Source of the DNA: Gracilinanus agilis
Lineage: Eukaryota
NCBI RefSeq assembly: GCF_016433145.1
Contig: NC_058131.1
Location: 700,224,319 to 700,288,318 of the forward strand
DNA length: 64,000 bases
Direction of reading: 5' to 3'
In this document: positions 50,351-54,103 of the stretch, piece by piece
How the letters are laid out: each line of letters opens with the position of its first letter
Position numbering within the stretch: the first letter of the stretch is position 1
The notes under the pieces: generated by a model
The model's input: only the letters and a program-made list of their open reading frames with translations
The model's database searches: none
What the model was told of the DNA's origin: nothing
Made by a program: the position numbers and the translations under genes

Positions 50351-51230
50351 ACAAGGACAGGGAATACCATAGCAACAATGTAATTTTAATTTTTATTTGG
50401 GACAAGGATAAACAGTACTTTTAGGGGCAGATATATAGCATGATGGTTAGTGATGGGCTTGAAATCAGGAAGTCTTCTCTTCATGAATCCCAAGTCACTT
50501 AACCCTGTTTGCCTAAAAAAAAAAATAAAATTAAAAAACCCAATTTTTTATTAGATAAAACTAATAAGCAATAATATTTAAGCAGTATAAAAAATTAGCA
50601 ATTTGTTTAATTTGACATAGGCTTGCAACAATAATTAAACAAATAATTAAATTGTTTAGTAAATGATTATTTTTATGTAGGACAAGGATAAACAATAAAG
50701 TAACACAACTTAATCCTAGCCAGGGTTCTTTGTGAATATTGCCTTCTCCCATTCCTTTTGCCCTTGGAGAAGTCTTGAACCCCAATGTGGTTTGAATTCC
50801 TTTCTATCTAGTATGATTTGGTGATTATTGTTCTACAGGTAGAGTAGAGGAATGGAAACTTCAGCAAAGGCAGCTCCTGCACCTTAGCTCAGGCTGGGTC
50901 TGTGGCTGTTAGGCTTTCTCCTTCCCTGGCTCAACCTGACCTAGGATCTAACTGCAGCTTGCCCAACAGCCCCAAACTCTTGCTGCTACTTGTTGTTGGT
51001 CTCCAGTTCACAGAATCCACCACCACTAGCACCCTATTATCAAAGGCACAGCAGTGAGTTGATTAATGCAACCTGGGAGGACCTAAGCATACAGCCAGGA
51101 ATCCTCTTAGCCTCTACTGTGGAATAGAAGCCAATCTGTATCTAGCTTCTGAGCTGGTCAGATCAGGGCCTGGAAGATCAAGCACAATCTAACACTCAGT
51201 CTTAAATGGAGAGAGCTGACACTGGGGCAG

Positions 51231-52640
51231 TCATCTAGTGAACAGCACCACCAGCTCATAGTGCTGGGTATGTGGAAACATGTCTACAGGCACAGCTTGT
51301 CTCAGGACAAAAGGCTCGCCCAGGAGGTCCTTGCCAGGGTCTGGGGGGCAGCACAACTCAAGGAAGTTTCTTTTGGCCTTTCCCTCTGGGTAGCAGGAAA
51401 CAAACAGCAGCGTCCTAATGGCTGTGCAATTTCTAATGGCCCGAACCACCTGACAGTTCAATCCAGTCCGGGATGGATCCACCATAACCACTAGGGACTG
51501 ACCAGCCTCCTGCGACTTTAAAAGCTGGGGCACTACATTCTCCACATGGTCAGCATGGAATTCCCAGTTGGTGATTCCATTGAAAGCTGCAGTCCATTTG
51601 GCATCCTCTACAGCCTGACCCGCTAGCCCGGTGCTTAGGACCTGGGATGTGTGCGGAGCCAGGGAGAGGCTGGTGGCTCCAGTTCCTTGGCTAAGGTCAA
51701 GGAGGAGGGTATTGGGGTCCATCCCGCTTAGTTCTCCCACCACCCGGTAAAGAACCTCCACAGCAGCTGAATTAATTTGGAAAAAGGCTCCTGGTGAGAT
51801 GCGGAATTTAAAGCCTGGCAAGTCTTCAAAAAGGTGAGAGTCCCCTGCGAGGAGCTGGTAGCAAGGCTGCTGCTGGTCGCCTGCCCTTTCTTGGAAGTAG
51901 AGGGAGGCCAATTCACAGACAGCCCCGGGCCCTCGGGTGAAGAATTCCTGGAGTTCCTCCTTCGGCTCACGCAGCTCCTCCGGACTCAGCCCCTGCGGTT
52001 CGAAGGAGACGATGGCCATCGTGTGGCCCCGGCTGGTGCTCCTGACCGTGAGCTCGTGCCAGTGTCCGCTGGCATCCGAGTCCAAGTAGGGGTCGAGAGG
52101 GGTCTGTTCAAGAAAAGCCTGGTAGCAGCGGGCCACGCGTTGATGCGCGTCCGGGATGTGCTTCAAGTGCCCGGGCCCCACGCATACCGGGTGCTGCTCG
52201 CGGCCGGAGCCTAGCACGTAGCCCACTGTCCGGGGCCGGCCGTCAGGGCCCTGTCGGACGGCGAAATTACACTTGTTCCGATAGCCGTGGAGGACGGGAG
52301 ACGGCCGGAAGGGCTGCAGGCGTGAGCAAAGCGCGCCGGCCTCACCATCTGGGCTCCCGAGCAGACGCAAGCGACCCTCGAGCCACTGCAGGAGCCCGCG
52401 CAGCGCGTCCGTCTTCACCCGGAGCTGCTGCTCGTAATCCAGCCGCCACAACGGTGTCACCAGGTCCGCTAGCCGCTCGGGCCATGAGCCGGGCTCCGGA
52501 CTCCACTCTTCTGCCGCCGGTGCCGCCGCAGCCTTTTCCGGGCACGCGGAGCCCAGCCAGGCCCGCGGGGTACCCCAGGGGGGAGGCCCTCTGCGGGACA
52601 GCAGCGCCACTCCGGGAAGGCAGGAGCCGAGGCGCCTCAT
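51231..52640 (-). CDS. TRMT2B: Intronless TRMT2B-like tRNA/rRNA (uracil-5)-methyltransferase homolog, 469 aa, probable retrogene
   Basis: One uninterrupted ORF colinear with recalled TRMT2B (ERLADLVTPLWRL, GYRNK, AFFQIN, FVSC, VDMFPHTQHYELVVLFTR). The ORF-track start at 52802 is TTG; the first ATG (gccggggccATGA) is at 52640. Confidence 0.9.
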   Translation of the reverse strand: MRRLGSCLPGVALLSRRGPPPWGTPRAWLGSACPEKAAAAPAAEEWSPEPGSWPERLADLVTPLWRLDYEQQLRVKTDALRGLLQWLEGRLRLLGSPDGEAGALCSRLQPFRPSPVLHGYRNKCNFAVRQGPDGRPRTVGYVLGSGREQHPVCVGPGHLKHIPDAHQRVARCYQAFLEQTPLDPYLDSDASGHWHELTVRSTSRGHTMAIVSFEPQGLSPEELREPKEELQEFFTRGPGAVCELASLYFQERAGDQQQPCYQLLAGDSHLFEDLPGFKFRISPGAFFQINSAAVEVLYRVVGELSGMDPNTLLLDLSQGTGATSLSLAPHTSQVLSTGLAGQAVEDAKWTAAFNGITNWEFHADHVENVVPQLLKSQEAGQSLVVMVDPSRTGLNCQVVRAIRNCTAIRTLLFVSCYPEGKAKRNFLELCCPPDPGKDLLGEPFVLRQAVPVDMFPHTQHYELVVLFTR

Positions 52641-52649
52641 GGCCCCGGC

Positions 52650-52910
52650 ACAACACGTGGTTAGGAGTGAGAACCCAAGCCCGGGCCGGGAAAAGCCCCG
52701 GGATGACCGGCGCAAAATTGTCTCTTCCTCGCTTCTCCGCCCACAAGTCCCTGCGCTCTTTCCACCAATCAGAACCTCTTTCACACGTTCTATACCAATC
52801 AAAGGTCAGCTCCTGGCAGCAGCGCCCTCTGGGAAATCAAGGTCTTACTCTCCTCCAATCAACGCTAGCCTTTGGACCCTTCCTTTCACGGGAAATGTAG
52901 TCTTCTTCCC
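52650..52910. promoter_or_regulatory. Promoter-like motif cluster upstream of the TRMT2B-like ORF: CACGTG (52654-52659), three CCAATC boxes (52765, 52795, 52855), ACTACAnnTCCC on - strand (52890-52901)
   Basis: Motifs read directly; adjoins a CpG-rich stretch ~52000-52750. Confidence 0.65.
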
Positions 52911-53657
52911 TTCTGGCTACCTTGAGTAGCCACGGCTTCCCCTGTCTCCTTCCCGCTTAGCAAAAAAAGAGAAAGGGCCCAGACCCGAGTAATGGGAAGG
53001 GAAGACTTTTGTTGTCCGTAGAGAGAATTGTCAGGGAAGCCTATCAGAATATTAGTACTGGTTTGTTACTTCGCACCCACAAAGCACAGTCCTTTGCACA
53101 TAGAAGGCACTTAATTAATGTTTCATTCACGCATTCCTTCTTTAAGGCTTGTTCAGGAAATTCTCAGCTTTGGTCTCAGCTAACTGTGCAAAGAGAACCT
53201 CCAGGACCGTGACGTGGCAGGAAAATAAGAATCAAACAAGCAGCGACCTTCAAAACCAAGTCACTAGTCAGGAGAAAGTCCAAGCCCCGCCTCCCCACCC
53301 CGCAGGGGAGCGATGTCCTCCAGAAAACGGCCATAGGGTAAGGCCGCCCATCAACCGCCCCCTCTGACCTCGGAGGTTACACGGTCTTAGCTACCTCATT
53401 AACTCGCTGGTTAACCAGGTAGCTCAAACTTCAGGTGGTCGGTACTTGGAGGAAAACTGTAATGCAATGAAGCAAGACTGCCCGATTTGAAAAGAAAGTC
53501 AGTTTCGAAATTAAAAAGAAAACTTTCCCAGATGGTTAAAGTAAGCGACTATTTATTACCCTTCCATTGATGGGGCAAAGGTCCCTTTGTTGCAATGAGT
53601 GACTCATTAACATTTTGATTATATAACCCAGCGACTTAAAATCGCCTCATTCTGCAG

Positions 53658-53777: not shown

Positions 53778-53984
53778 GTAAGTTATATTTTAAATATTTT
53801 TATGGAACATTTTTTCCCACCACATCTCTAAAAATATTCCCGCCTGTCTCTTGCCTGTTTTTGTGCTCATGTGCGAATTTTTAGTGTCTGAATGCTGGTT
53901 TTGTTTATAAAAAATGCTCAGAGCTGGGTTAGGTCCAAGGACAATGACAAGAACAAGTGTATGTGAAGGAGAACTATAACTGTG

Positions 53985-54046
53985 CCCATCAGATGGGGAA
54001 TGGCTGAACAAATTGTGACCTCTGAACATAATGGAACATTCCTGCA

Positions 54047-54103
<57 letters not shown>

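Follow-up and report, generated by a model that had tools for sequence, protein, structure and literature searches.

What becomes of a uracil methyltransferase when the site of its cofactor is altered while the residues that attack its target are kept? This question is raised by an intronless open reading frame (ORF) in a window of 64,000 nucleotides from the marsupial Gracilinanus agilis (NCBI RefSeq assembly GCF_016433145.1, contig NC_058131.1, positions 700,224,319 to 700,288,318), which encodes a relative of the mitochondrial RNA methyltransferase TRMT2B and is, as argued below, a retrocopy of that gene. An earlier note on this DNA had proposed that changes in the motifs binding S-adenosylmethionine (SAM) set this copy apart from a plain backup of TRMT2B. 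As judged from the alignment of 121 sequences described below, the motif changes are marsupial-wide; they were inherited from the TRMT2B of the marsupial stem and were not acquired privately by the retrocopy.

The retrocopy protein is a member of the TrmA/RumA/Trm2 family by sequence and fold. It matched the Pfam family of tRNA uracil-5 methyltransferases (PF05958) at 38.3 bits (cut-off, 23; E 1.1e-9), and its sequence matches in the PDB were RlmCD (E 5e-22), an RlmC-like protein, RumA, PabTrmU54 and TrmA. The AlphaFold2 model had a mean predicted local distance difference test score (pLDDT) of 72.5, with values of about 80-90 in the methyltransferase domain and low values for residues 1-62. 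In the comparison by Foldseek with RlmCD, RumA, TrmA and PabTrmU54, the template modelling (TM) scores were 0.57-0.72, and the predicted fold is intact. In this model strand beta1 (residues 311-316) is followed by a loop that contains motif I, and Gly338 stands where motif II canonically lies, directly behind strand beta2 (residues 333-337). The earlier note had suggested a structure model as a check, and the model confirmed the fold and the strand positions. The first 34 residues contain five Arg and no Asp or Glu, and the protein would be located in the mitochondrion.

The motifs that hold and attack the uridine are present in the retrocopy, with FFQ of motif X at residues 286-288 and DPSR of motif IV at residues 388-391. 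The FFQIN motif, the nucleophilic Cys and the general base Glu had been reported as intact, the latter two at coordinates that proved exact, and all of them are invariant in the alignment. The departures are found in the cofactor motifs. The family motif I is Asp-x-x-(Cys/Ser)-Gly-x-Gly, while the retrocopy has Gln318 at the small Cys/Ser position before Gly-x-Gly and Ser in place of Cys317. The deviation of LDLSQGTG pointed out in the earlier note is thus real, although the positions given for it, 51698-51678, begin 3 nucleotides late and encode DLSQGTG; the full motif occupies 51701-51678. The reading of motif II as LSTGLAGQ, with Gly in place of the acid, was exact in the translation, so that the acid that binds the ribose hydroxyls of SAM is missing at position 338. 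On the evidence of its sequence, the retrocopy protein falls in the TRMT2B orthologous group and in the 5-methyluridine (m5U) methyltransferase fold family, yet it is without one defining cofactor feature. Errors of the assembly were considered as a source of these residues and rejected as far as the listed differences go. A contig of the DNA run X24, from the same or a near-identical animal, covers 51228-52662 with four differences from the assembly, and the differences listed within this interval (52147, 52467, 52581 and 52622) all lie outside the motif codons. With no listed difference in a motif codon, the motif residues are unlikely to be assembly errors.

The alignment consisted of the window protein and its best 120 database relatives, that is, 109 non-marsupial vertebrate TRMT2B and 12 marsupial sequences. 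Cys317, Cys318 and Glu338 are present in all 109 non-marsupial proteins. In platypus, eutherians, birds, turtles, lizards and a caecilian, motif I reads D-(I/V)-C-C-G-T-G and motif II reads G-(I/V)-E-(L/V/I)-x-E-(Q/K). The HMMER alignment pairs Gly338 with Glu333 of RlmCD, the carboxylate of which is hydrogen-bonded to a ribose hydroxyl of S-adenosylhomocysteine (SAH) in the crystal structure of the RlmCD-SAH complex (PMC5614603). The equivalent residue of PabTrmU54, Asp299, binds both ribose oxygens, and RumA is reported to share the S-adenosylmethionine (AdoMet)-binding residues of PabTrmU54 (PMC2528175). The role of SAM ribose binder that the earlier note had assigned to the motif II acid is therefore borne out by the solved homologs.

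The homologs also indicate roles for other residues of the pocket. The FFQ residues match F263 and Q265 of RumA, which contact uracil and the cofactor (PMC2528175). Asp388 of the retrocopy matches D381 of RlmCD and D363 of RumA; the D381A mutant of RlmCD keeps about 10% of the activity (PMC5614603), and D363 of RumA has a part in binding the cofactor, in orienting the Gln and in stabilising the enolate (PMC2528175). Arg391 corresponds to R366 of RumA, which contacts the ribose of the target uridine (PMC2528175). In PabTrmU54 the motif III acid D326 binds N6 and N1 of the adenine (PMC2528175); we infer that D359 of RlmCD is its equivalent, and Asp364 of the retrocopy would hence have a motif III role. 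By comparison with the homologs, the residues conserved in the marsupial proteins include the Gln that recognises uracil, the Phe at the pocket for homocysteine, the Tyr in contact with the carboxylate of homocysteine, and both the nucleophile and the general base (PMC5614603, PMC2528175).

The protein search returned two groups of marsupial sequences. The close orthologs of the window ORF are found in Monodelphis (93% identity, named 'TRMT2B-like'), wombat (82%), Dromiciops (80%) and Tasmanian devil (80%). The second group, of about 490 residues and from seven species, is 55-58% identical to the window ORF and represents the multi-exon TRMT2B. The altered motifs are found in both. The retrocopy clade has D-L-S-Q-G-T-G-A-T in motif I and S-T-G-L-(A/V)-G-Q in motif II, and the multi-exon clade has D-F-S-H-G-T-G-A-T and S-M-G-L-V-G-Q, with Gly, Ala or Ser at position 338. 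Since both clades carry the altered motifs, the changes are older than the retroduplication and date from the marsupial stem. A private change of the retrocopy was accordingly rejected, all seven multi-exon marsupial proteins carrying the motif changes, and the contrast with a plain backup is not supported, since Ser317, Gln/His318, Ser336 and Gly338 are shared by the multi-exon TRMT2B of the seven species. The earlier note had said that it would be refuted if active marsupial proteins had the same residues; the sequence half of this was found, in the alignment that includes the multi-exon marsupial gene. Its proposal of weakened SAM binding stands as a fair one on the residues themselves, since the ribose acid is lost, motif I is deviant and the uridine-attacking residues are kept, but the weakening would not be peculiar to the retrocopy.

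The stem changes are concentrated at the cofactor pocket. Of the sites conserved in at least 97% of the 109 non-marsupial vertebrates, which numbered 187, the 12 marsupial sequences all have a replacement at 19, and the methyltransferase domain accounts for 15 of these (one-sided p = 0.007). Near the pocket, taken as no more than two residues away from a cofactor-contacting position of RlmCD, 9 of 25 conserved sites are replaced, compared with 10 of 162 elsewhere (p = 1.3e-4). The residues common to both clades include Gly284, Ala293, Ser317, Thr323, Ser336, Gly338, Val366, Asp388 and Lys421, at sites that are 97-100% conserved in the other vertebrates. At seven of the 19 sites the new residue is identical in all 12 marsupial sequences (His195, Gly284, Ala293, Ser317, Thr323, Asp388 and Lys421), which indicates renewed constraint. 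Phe286, Phe287, Gln288, Tyr298, Asp315, Gly319, Gly321, Cys416 and Glu462 are invariant in the same 12 sequences.

Gene conversion between the paralogs was also considered as the source of the shared residues. It is not favoured: the shared derived sites span positions 195-438, the two clades have long separate stems, and the synonymous divergence (dS) between paralogs is at least 0.9. Gene conversion, if it occurred, would leave the marsupial-wide conclusion unchanged. No third, canonical marsupial TRMT2B was found among the best 120 matches. The unplaced and unnamed sequence P0024, considered as a third marsupial copy, is a long-branch eutherian sequence, 79% identical to that of pig.

The multi-exon marsupial TRMT2B has 12 coding exons over 18-21 kb in the three loci compared (L001, L005 and L006), and the window ORF is continuous over all 11 of its intron positions. 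This difference shows the window ORF to be a processed retrogene. A divergent, head-to-head neighbour with a PhzF domain (PBLD) stands beside it in every fetched locus, namely those of Monodelphis, Dromiciops and Sarcophilus (L002, L003 and L004), and the window and the Monodelphis locus are colinear over 8.3 kb with 86.7% identity. The ORF is thus a processed TRMT2B retrogene whose insertion next to the PBLD promoter is older than the split between the American and the Australasian marsupials. A search for retroposition scars, as homology of the 3' untranslated region (UTR) to the parent flanks, gave no significant match, which is expected because dS is above 1.7; a possible trace on the poly(A) side is an AT-rich tract near 50520-50700. 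In Monodelphis the multi-exon gene (L001) lies on CM051225.1 (538 Mb) and the retrocopy on CM051223.1 (761 Mb). Should the opossum X chromosome be far smaller than the former, the parent gene would not be X-linked in this species. At the Trichosurus multi-exon locus (L006), a 105-residue Ribosomal_L36e model is annotated on the opposite strand, spanning the entire 22-kb locus.

In the maximum-likelihood tree, the marsupial TRMT2B form one clade (100/100) that is sister to the eutherians, with platypus outside (support 99-100), and within it the retrocopy and multi-exon sequences form two clades (100/100 each). A FastTree analysis of the 121 sequences agreed with this placement. The branch leading to the marsupials is 0.23 long, followed by branches of 0.38 and 0.32 to the two clades, whereas the eutherian stem is 0.089 and the crown branches are 0.02-0.14.

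Pairwise ratios of nonsynonymous to synonymous divergence (dN/dS) were calculated by the Nei-Gojobori method. In the retrocopy clade dN/dS was 0.14-0.22 overall and 0.07-0.14 in the methyltransferase domain, at dS of 0.25-0.76; the corresponding values in the multi-exon clade were 0.21-0.29 and 0.19-0.21, at dS of 0.19-0.36. The retrocopy is therefore under purifying selection, and so is the multi-exon copy. For the window ORF, the G+C content at third codon positions (GC3) falls from 0.80 in the 5' half (51935-52640) to 0.63 in the 3' half. In the retrocopy orthologs these values are 0.80-0.93 and 0.63-0.77, and in the multi-exon paralog GC3 is 0.49-0.60. Five losses of conserved sites by the retrocopy clade in the 5' half are changes to Arg, which suggests composition-driven change near a CpG-rich promoter.

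Since the duplication, 11 conserved sites have been lost in each clade, a different set in each; those of the multi-exon copy fall mostly within the methyltransferase domain and those of the retrocopy mostly within the central RNA-binding domain. In the multi-exon clade Gln has replaced both Arg391 and His460, the latter next to the base Glu, and Arg424 and Cys431 are gone as well, while the retrocopy keeps Arg391 and His460; the multi-exon copy has His318 and Gly364, and the retrocopy Gln318 and Asp364. As far as the residues tell, the retrocopy is the more conservative, or canonical, paralog at the catalytic centre, and of the two it probably has the greater catalytic competence. Together with the lower dN/dS of its methyltransferase domain, the retention of Arg391 and His460 speaks further against the view of the retrocopy as the deviant paralog.

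A search for an RNA run of the window's own species that contains the stretch found none. In three small runs of a related species, from three studies, contigs of the ortholog with about 92% identity cover approximately 50650-52721 and then stop; there is no cover over 52808-53035, and cover resumes in a contig that ends at 53540 and runs on into unlike sequence. The end at 53540 would be a splice site of PBLD. The transcript-shaped cover and the spliced PBLD contig led us to read these runs as RNA, on the shape of their contigs, and this argues for transcription of the ortholog of the retrocopy in the related species. Longer contigs of the same runs, which match in conserved patches only, fit the mRNA of the multi-exon paralog, so that both mRNAs would be present there.

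The G+C content over 52250-52850 is 63-72%. The RNA-like contigs of the retrogene reach to about 52721 and those of PBLD start at about 53138-53229, which places the two starts about 420-510 bp apart, and two inverted CCAAT boxes are found at 52795-52800 and 52764-52769. The retrocopy has probably borrowed a bidirectional promoter. The coordinates of these features and of the motifs are collected in the table.

Table. Features of the TRMT2B retrocopy and its surroundings (positions in the window)
Feature	Position	Strand	Remarks
Intronless coding sequence, TRMT2B-like RNA (uracil-C5) methyltransferase-fold protein	51231..52640	minus	469 residues and stop; single uninterrupted ORF from first ATG
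FFQIN (motif X)	51771..51785	minus	Phe286, Phe287 and Gln288 are uracil and cofactor contacts; invariant in 121/121 aligned sequences
Motif I, LDLSQGTG, residues 314-321	51678..51701	minus	Asp315, Gly319 and Gly321 kept; Ser317-Gln318 for Cys-Cys
Motif II, LSTGLAGQ, residues 335-342	51615..51638	minus	Ser336 for Gly; Gly338 (GGG, 51629-51627) for ribose-binding Glu
Asp364, motif III position	51549..51551	minus	Retrocopy clade only; aligns with RlmCD Asp359; Gly in canonical TRMT2B and multi-exon marsupial copy
Motif IV, VDPSRTG	51462..51482	minus	Asp388 where 108/109 canonical vertebrate proteins have Asn; Arg391 kept
Cys416, nucleophile (motif VI, FVSC)	51393..51395	minus	Aligns with RlmCD catalytic position; invariant in 121/121
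Glu462, general base (motif VIII, HYE)	51255..51257	minus	Aligns with RlmCD catalytic position; invariant in 121/121
5' UTR, probable	52641..52721	minus	Related-species contigs end at 52701-52721; contigs cannot fix the start exactly
3' UTR, probable, possibly to ~50374	50650..51230	minus	Contig cover of X1, X12 and X17; AATAAA and AT-rich tract near 50520-50560
Shared intergenic/promoter region with divergent PBLD	52722..53540	.	PBLD first exon ~53138-53540, plus strand; PBLD coding ORF from 53682

Outside these features, the summed depth of DNA-run contigs is about 600 at 50414-50527 and 53036-53149, compared with about 20 elsewhere, with many loose ends; these intervals are dispersed repeats to either side of the gene. 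At 53980-54100, in the region of the first PBLD intron, a (CA)n/(TG)n microsatellite is seen as ORFs of Cys-Val and His-Thr repeats. The annotated 544-residue product of the Dromiciops ortholog (L003:6001-6137) carries a 5' extension joined across a 104-nucleotide gap; it looks like an annotation artefact, since the alignment with the orthologs begins only at the shared Met.

The explanation we tentatively favour is that the retrocopy is a working enzyme with a remodelled, and likely weaker, SAM pocket. On the marsupial stem TRMT2B went through a burst of change at near-invariant sites, with its centre at the cofactor pocket. The retrocopy, inserted beside the PBLD promoter, inherited the altered motifs and has since been kept by purifying selection and transcribed, the latter as seen in the related species. 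The uridine-attacking apparatus is kept whole (Phe286, Gln288, Asp388-Pro-x-Arg391, Cys416 and Glu462), as are several cofactor contacts (Tyr298, Asp315, Gly319 and Gly321), and Asp was gained at motif IV and, in the retrocopy lineage, at motif III, both towards the bacterial cofactor-binding consensus. The protein would still flip out and attack a uridine of mitochondrial tRNA or 12S rRNA, using SAM through the weaker pocket. The kept uridine apparatus, the cofactor contacts and the Asp gains are the reasons for which a SAM-using enzyme was judged most likely; retained SAM use and compensation by the gained Asp residues are our inference.

Several points weigh against this explanation. Loss of a motif II acid usually costs much of the affinity for SAM, and the acid is Glu in 109 of 109 other vertebrates and the ribose anchor in RlmCD (E333) and PabTrmU54 (D299). 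Change during the stem period was several-fold faster than in the marsupial crown and on the eutherian stem (0.23 + 0.38 compared with 0.089), which suggests a functional shift. Catalysis by TRMT2B is dispensable in cultured human cells and predicted to be lost in Bovinae and rat (PMC7237155), so that changes lowering the activity could be fixed by drift. The retained Cys and Glu could, moreover, be accounted for by covalent RNA binding independent of SAM.

These points lead to a possible, though somewhat doubtful, alternative, that all marsupial TRMT2B are SAM-blind RNA binders or chaperones. Useful SAM binding would have been lost in the marsupial ancestor, the paralogs would be kept for a role that does not involve methylation, for instance in the folding of tRNA or the assembly of mitoribosomes, and Cys416 and Glu462 would be retained since a reversible adduct of Cys with C6 of the uracil tightens RNA binding. 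Such an adduct reverts when no methyl group is transferred. A stable form of the covalent trap suggested in the earlier note is therefore unlikely. The reversible form has a precedent in TrmA, which in the wild type binds tRNA at 20 nM without SAM and about 50-fold more weakly as C324A (PMC7641329); because its Cys tightens binding in this way, retention of the Cys is no proof of methyl transfer. TrmA's chaperone activity does not depend on catalysis (PMC7641329), and one tRNA-Ser mutant is rescued by a yeast Trm2 without catalytic activity. Conservation is also seen in bovine and rat TRMT2B, although both are predicted to be dead, and the human knockout has no translation defect (PMC7237155). 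In the marsupials themselves, the loss of the ribose-binding Glu with eight further replacements around the pocket, and the burst of change followed by stasis in the tree, also agree with loss of SAM binding. However, the mainly cofactor-contacting Tyr298, Asp315, Gly319 and Gly321 are invariant over the whole marsupial tree, two of the changes recreate bacterial-type cofactor-binding acids (Asp388 and Asp364), and a dN/dS of 0.07-0.14 is very low for a methyltransferase domain without its chemistry. Since the Bovinae replace the Cys itself, the non-catalytic role proposed there needs no Cys (PMC7237155).

It is distinctly improbable, in our estimate, that the pocket has changed specificity, binding another ligand or holding SAM differently, with the paralogs dividing U54 of mitochondrial tRNA and U429 of 12S rRNA between them or having acquired new RNA targets. 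The different losses in the two clades, 11 in each and in different domains, would agree with such a division, as would the R391Q change of the multi-exon copy, at a contact to the ribose of the target uridine, and the presence of both mRNAs in the same runs; human TRMT2B has two substrate classes (PMC7237155). The Arg gains in the 5' half of the retrocopy, however, coincide with GC3 of 0.80-0.93 and may reflect composition, not function. A neutral relic, that is, a retropseudogene left open by chance with motif changes due to decay, is hardly credible. It could appeal to the Sarcophilus assembly, in which the frame is broken at L004:6130 (+1 G) and L004:6575-6576 (+2 G). Both breaks are in G runs, and the frame is restored after 148 codons, the intervening stretch encoding well-conserved protein in the shifted frame. 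Pseudogenisation was rejected as their cause; they are probably homopolymer assembly errors and the source of the 'LOW QUALITY PROTEIN' label. The ORF is intact in the window, in Monodelphis, in Dromiciops and in the wombat protein record, dN/dS is low at appreciable dS, the locus is transcribed in a related species, and the motif changes are older than the copy.

The favoured reading, of a working enzyme with a remodelled pocket, can be placed among known systems. Human and mouse TRMT2B, the mitochondrial methyltransferase for m5U54 of tRNA and m5U429 of 12S rRNA (PMC7237155), share with the retrocopy the orthologous group, the domain layout and the fold, as well as Phe-Phe-Gln, GxG, Pro-x-Arg of motif IV, Cys and Glu; the Arg-rich and acid-free amino terminus of the retrocopy may be a further resemblance. 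They are about 54-57% identical to the retrocopy and differ from it by its intronless state, by Cys-Cys to Ser-Gln (motif I), Glu to Gly (II), Gly to Asp (III) and Asn to Asp (IV), and by 19 near-invariant sites replaced in it. The intron-containing marsupial TRMT2B (P0029, P0005, P0006 and others) is like the retrocopy in Ser317, Ser336, Gly338, Asp388 and purifying selection, and unlike it in the loss of Arg391, His460, Arg424 and Cys431. RlmCD, RumA and PabTrmU54, the best matches in sequence and fold, have Asp at motifs III and IV as the retrocopy does, whereas the motif II acid of RlmCD and PabTrmU54 is Gly338 in the retrocopy; RumA has an iron-sulfur cluster and the retrocopy does not. 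E. coli TrmA, an m5U54 methyltransferase and tRNA chaperone of the same family and catalytic mechanism, is the precedent for RNA folding that does not require methyl transfer and for a Cys on which tight tRNA binding depends when SAM is absent (PMC7641329). The SAM site of TrmA is canonical, however, and its SAM-blind state is the engineered G220D, not a natural one (PMC7641329).

The nearest parallel is the TRMT2B of Bovinae and rat, described by Powell and Minczuk in 2020 (PMC7237155). There, as in the marsupials, an otherwise conserved protein has a lineage-specific departure in the catalytic centre, and a chaperone-only role was proposed. Bovinae have Tyr in place of the nucleophilic Cys, and high conservation of the SAM site is described for the species aligned (PMC7237155). 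Marsupial TRMT2B is the reverse, with the SAM site changed and Cys and Glu kept; the alteration dates back much further and is present in two paralogs. A conserved TRMT2B predicted to be inactive has already been published (PMC7237155), and the marsupial version alters the SAM site instead. A literature search on TRMT2B in marsupials found no linking paper beyond an unrelated review.

Loss of TRMT2B has no clear phenotype in cultured cells and its chemistry is predicted to be lost in cattle and rat, which raises the question of what conserves the protein. The marsupials represent a complementary natural experiment, at least as old as the American/Australasian split, in which the cofactor site was rebuilt, the uridine-attacking residues were kept, the gene was duplicated and both copies are under selection. 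In the boldest form of the SAM-blind reading, which we think unlikely, marsupials would have no canonical SAM-binding TRMT2B, and both copies would be SAM-independent factors of RNA folding or assembly acting through a reversible Cys-uridine adduct, possibly one for mitochondrial tRNAs and the other for 12S rRNA; marsupial mitochondrial RNA would then be without m5U. Marsupial TRMT2B bears on whether the conserved function of the protein is methylation or RNA handling, and on whether a working class I methyltransferase needs the ribose anchor of motif II.

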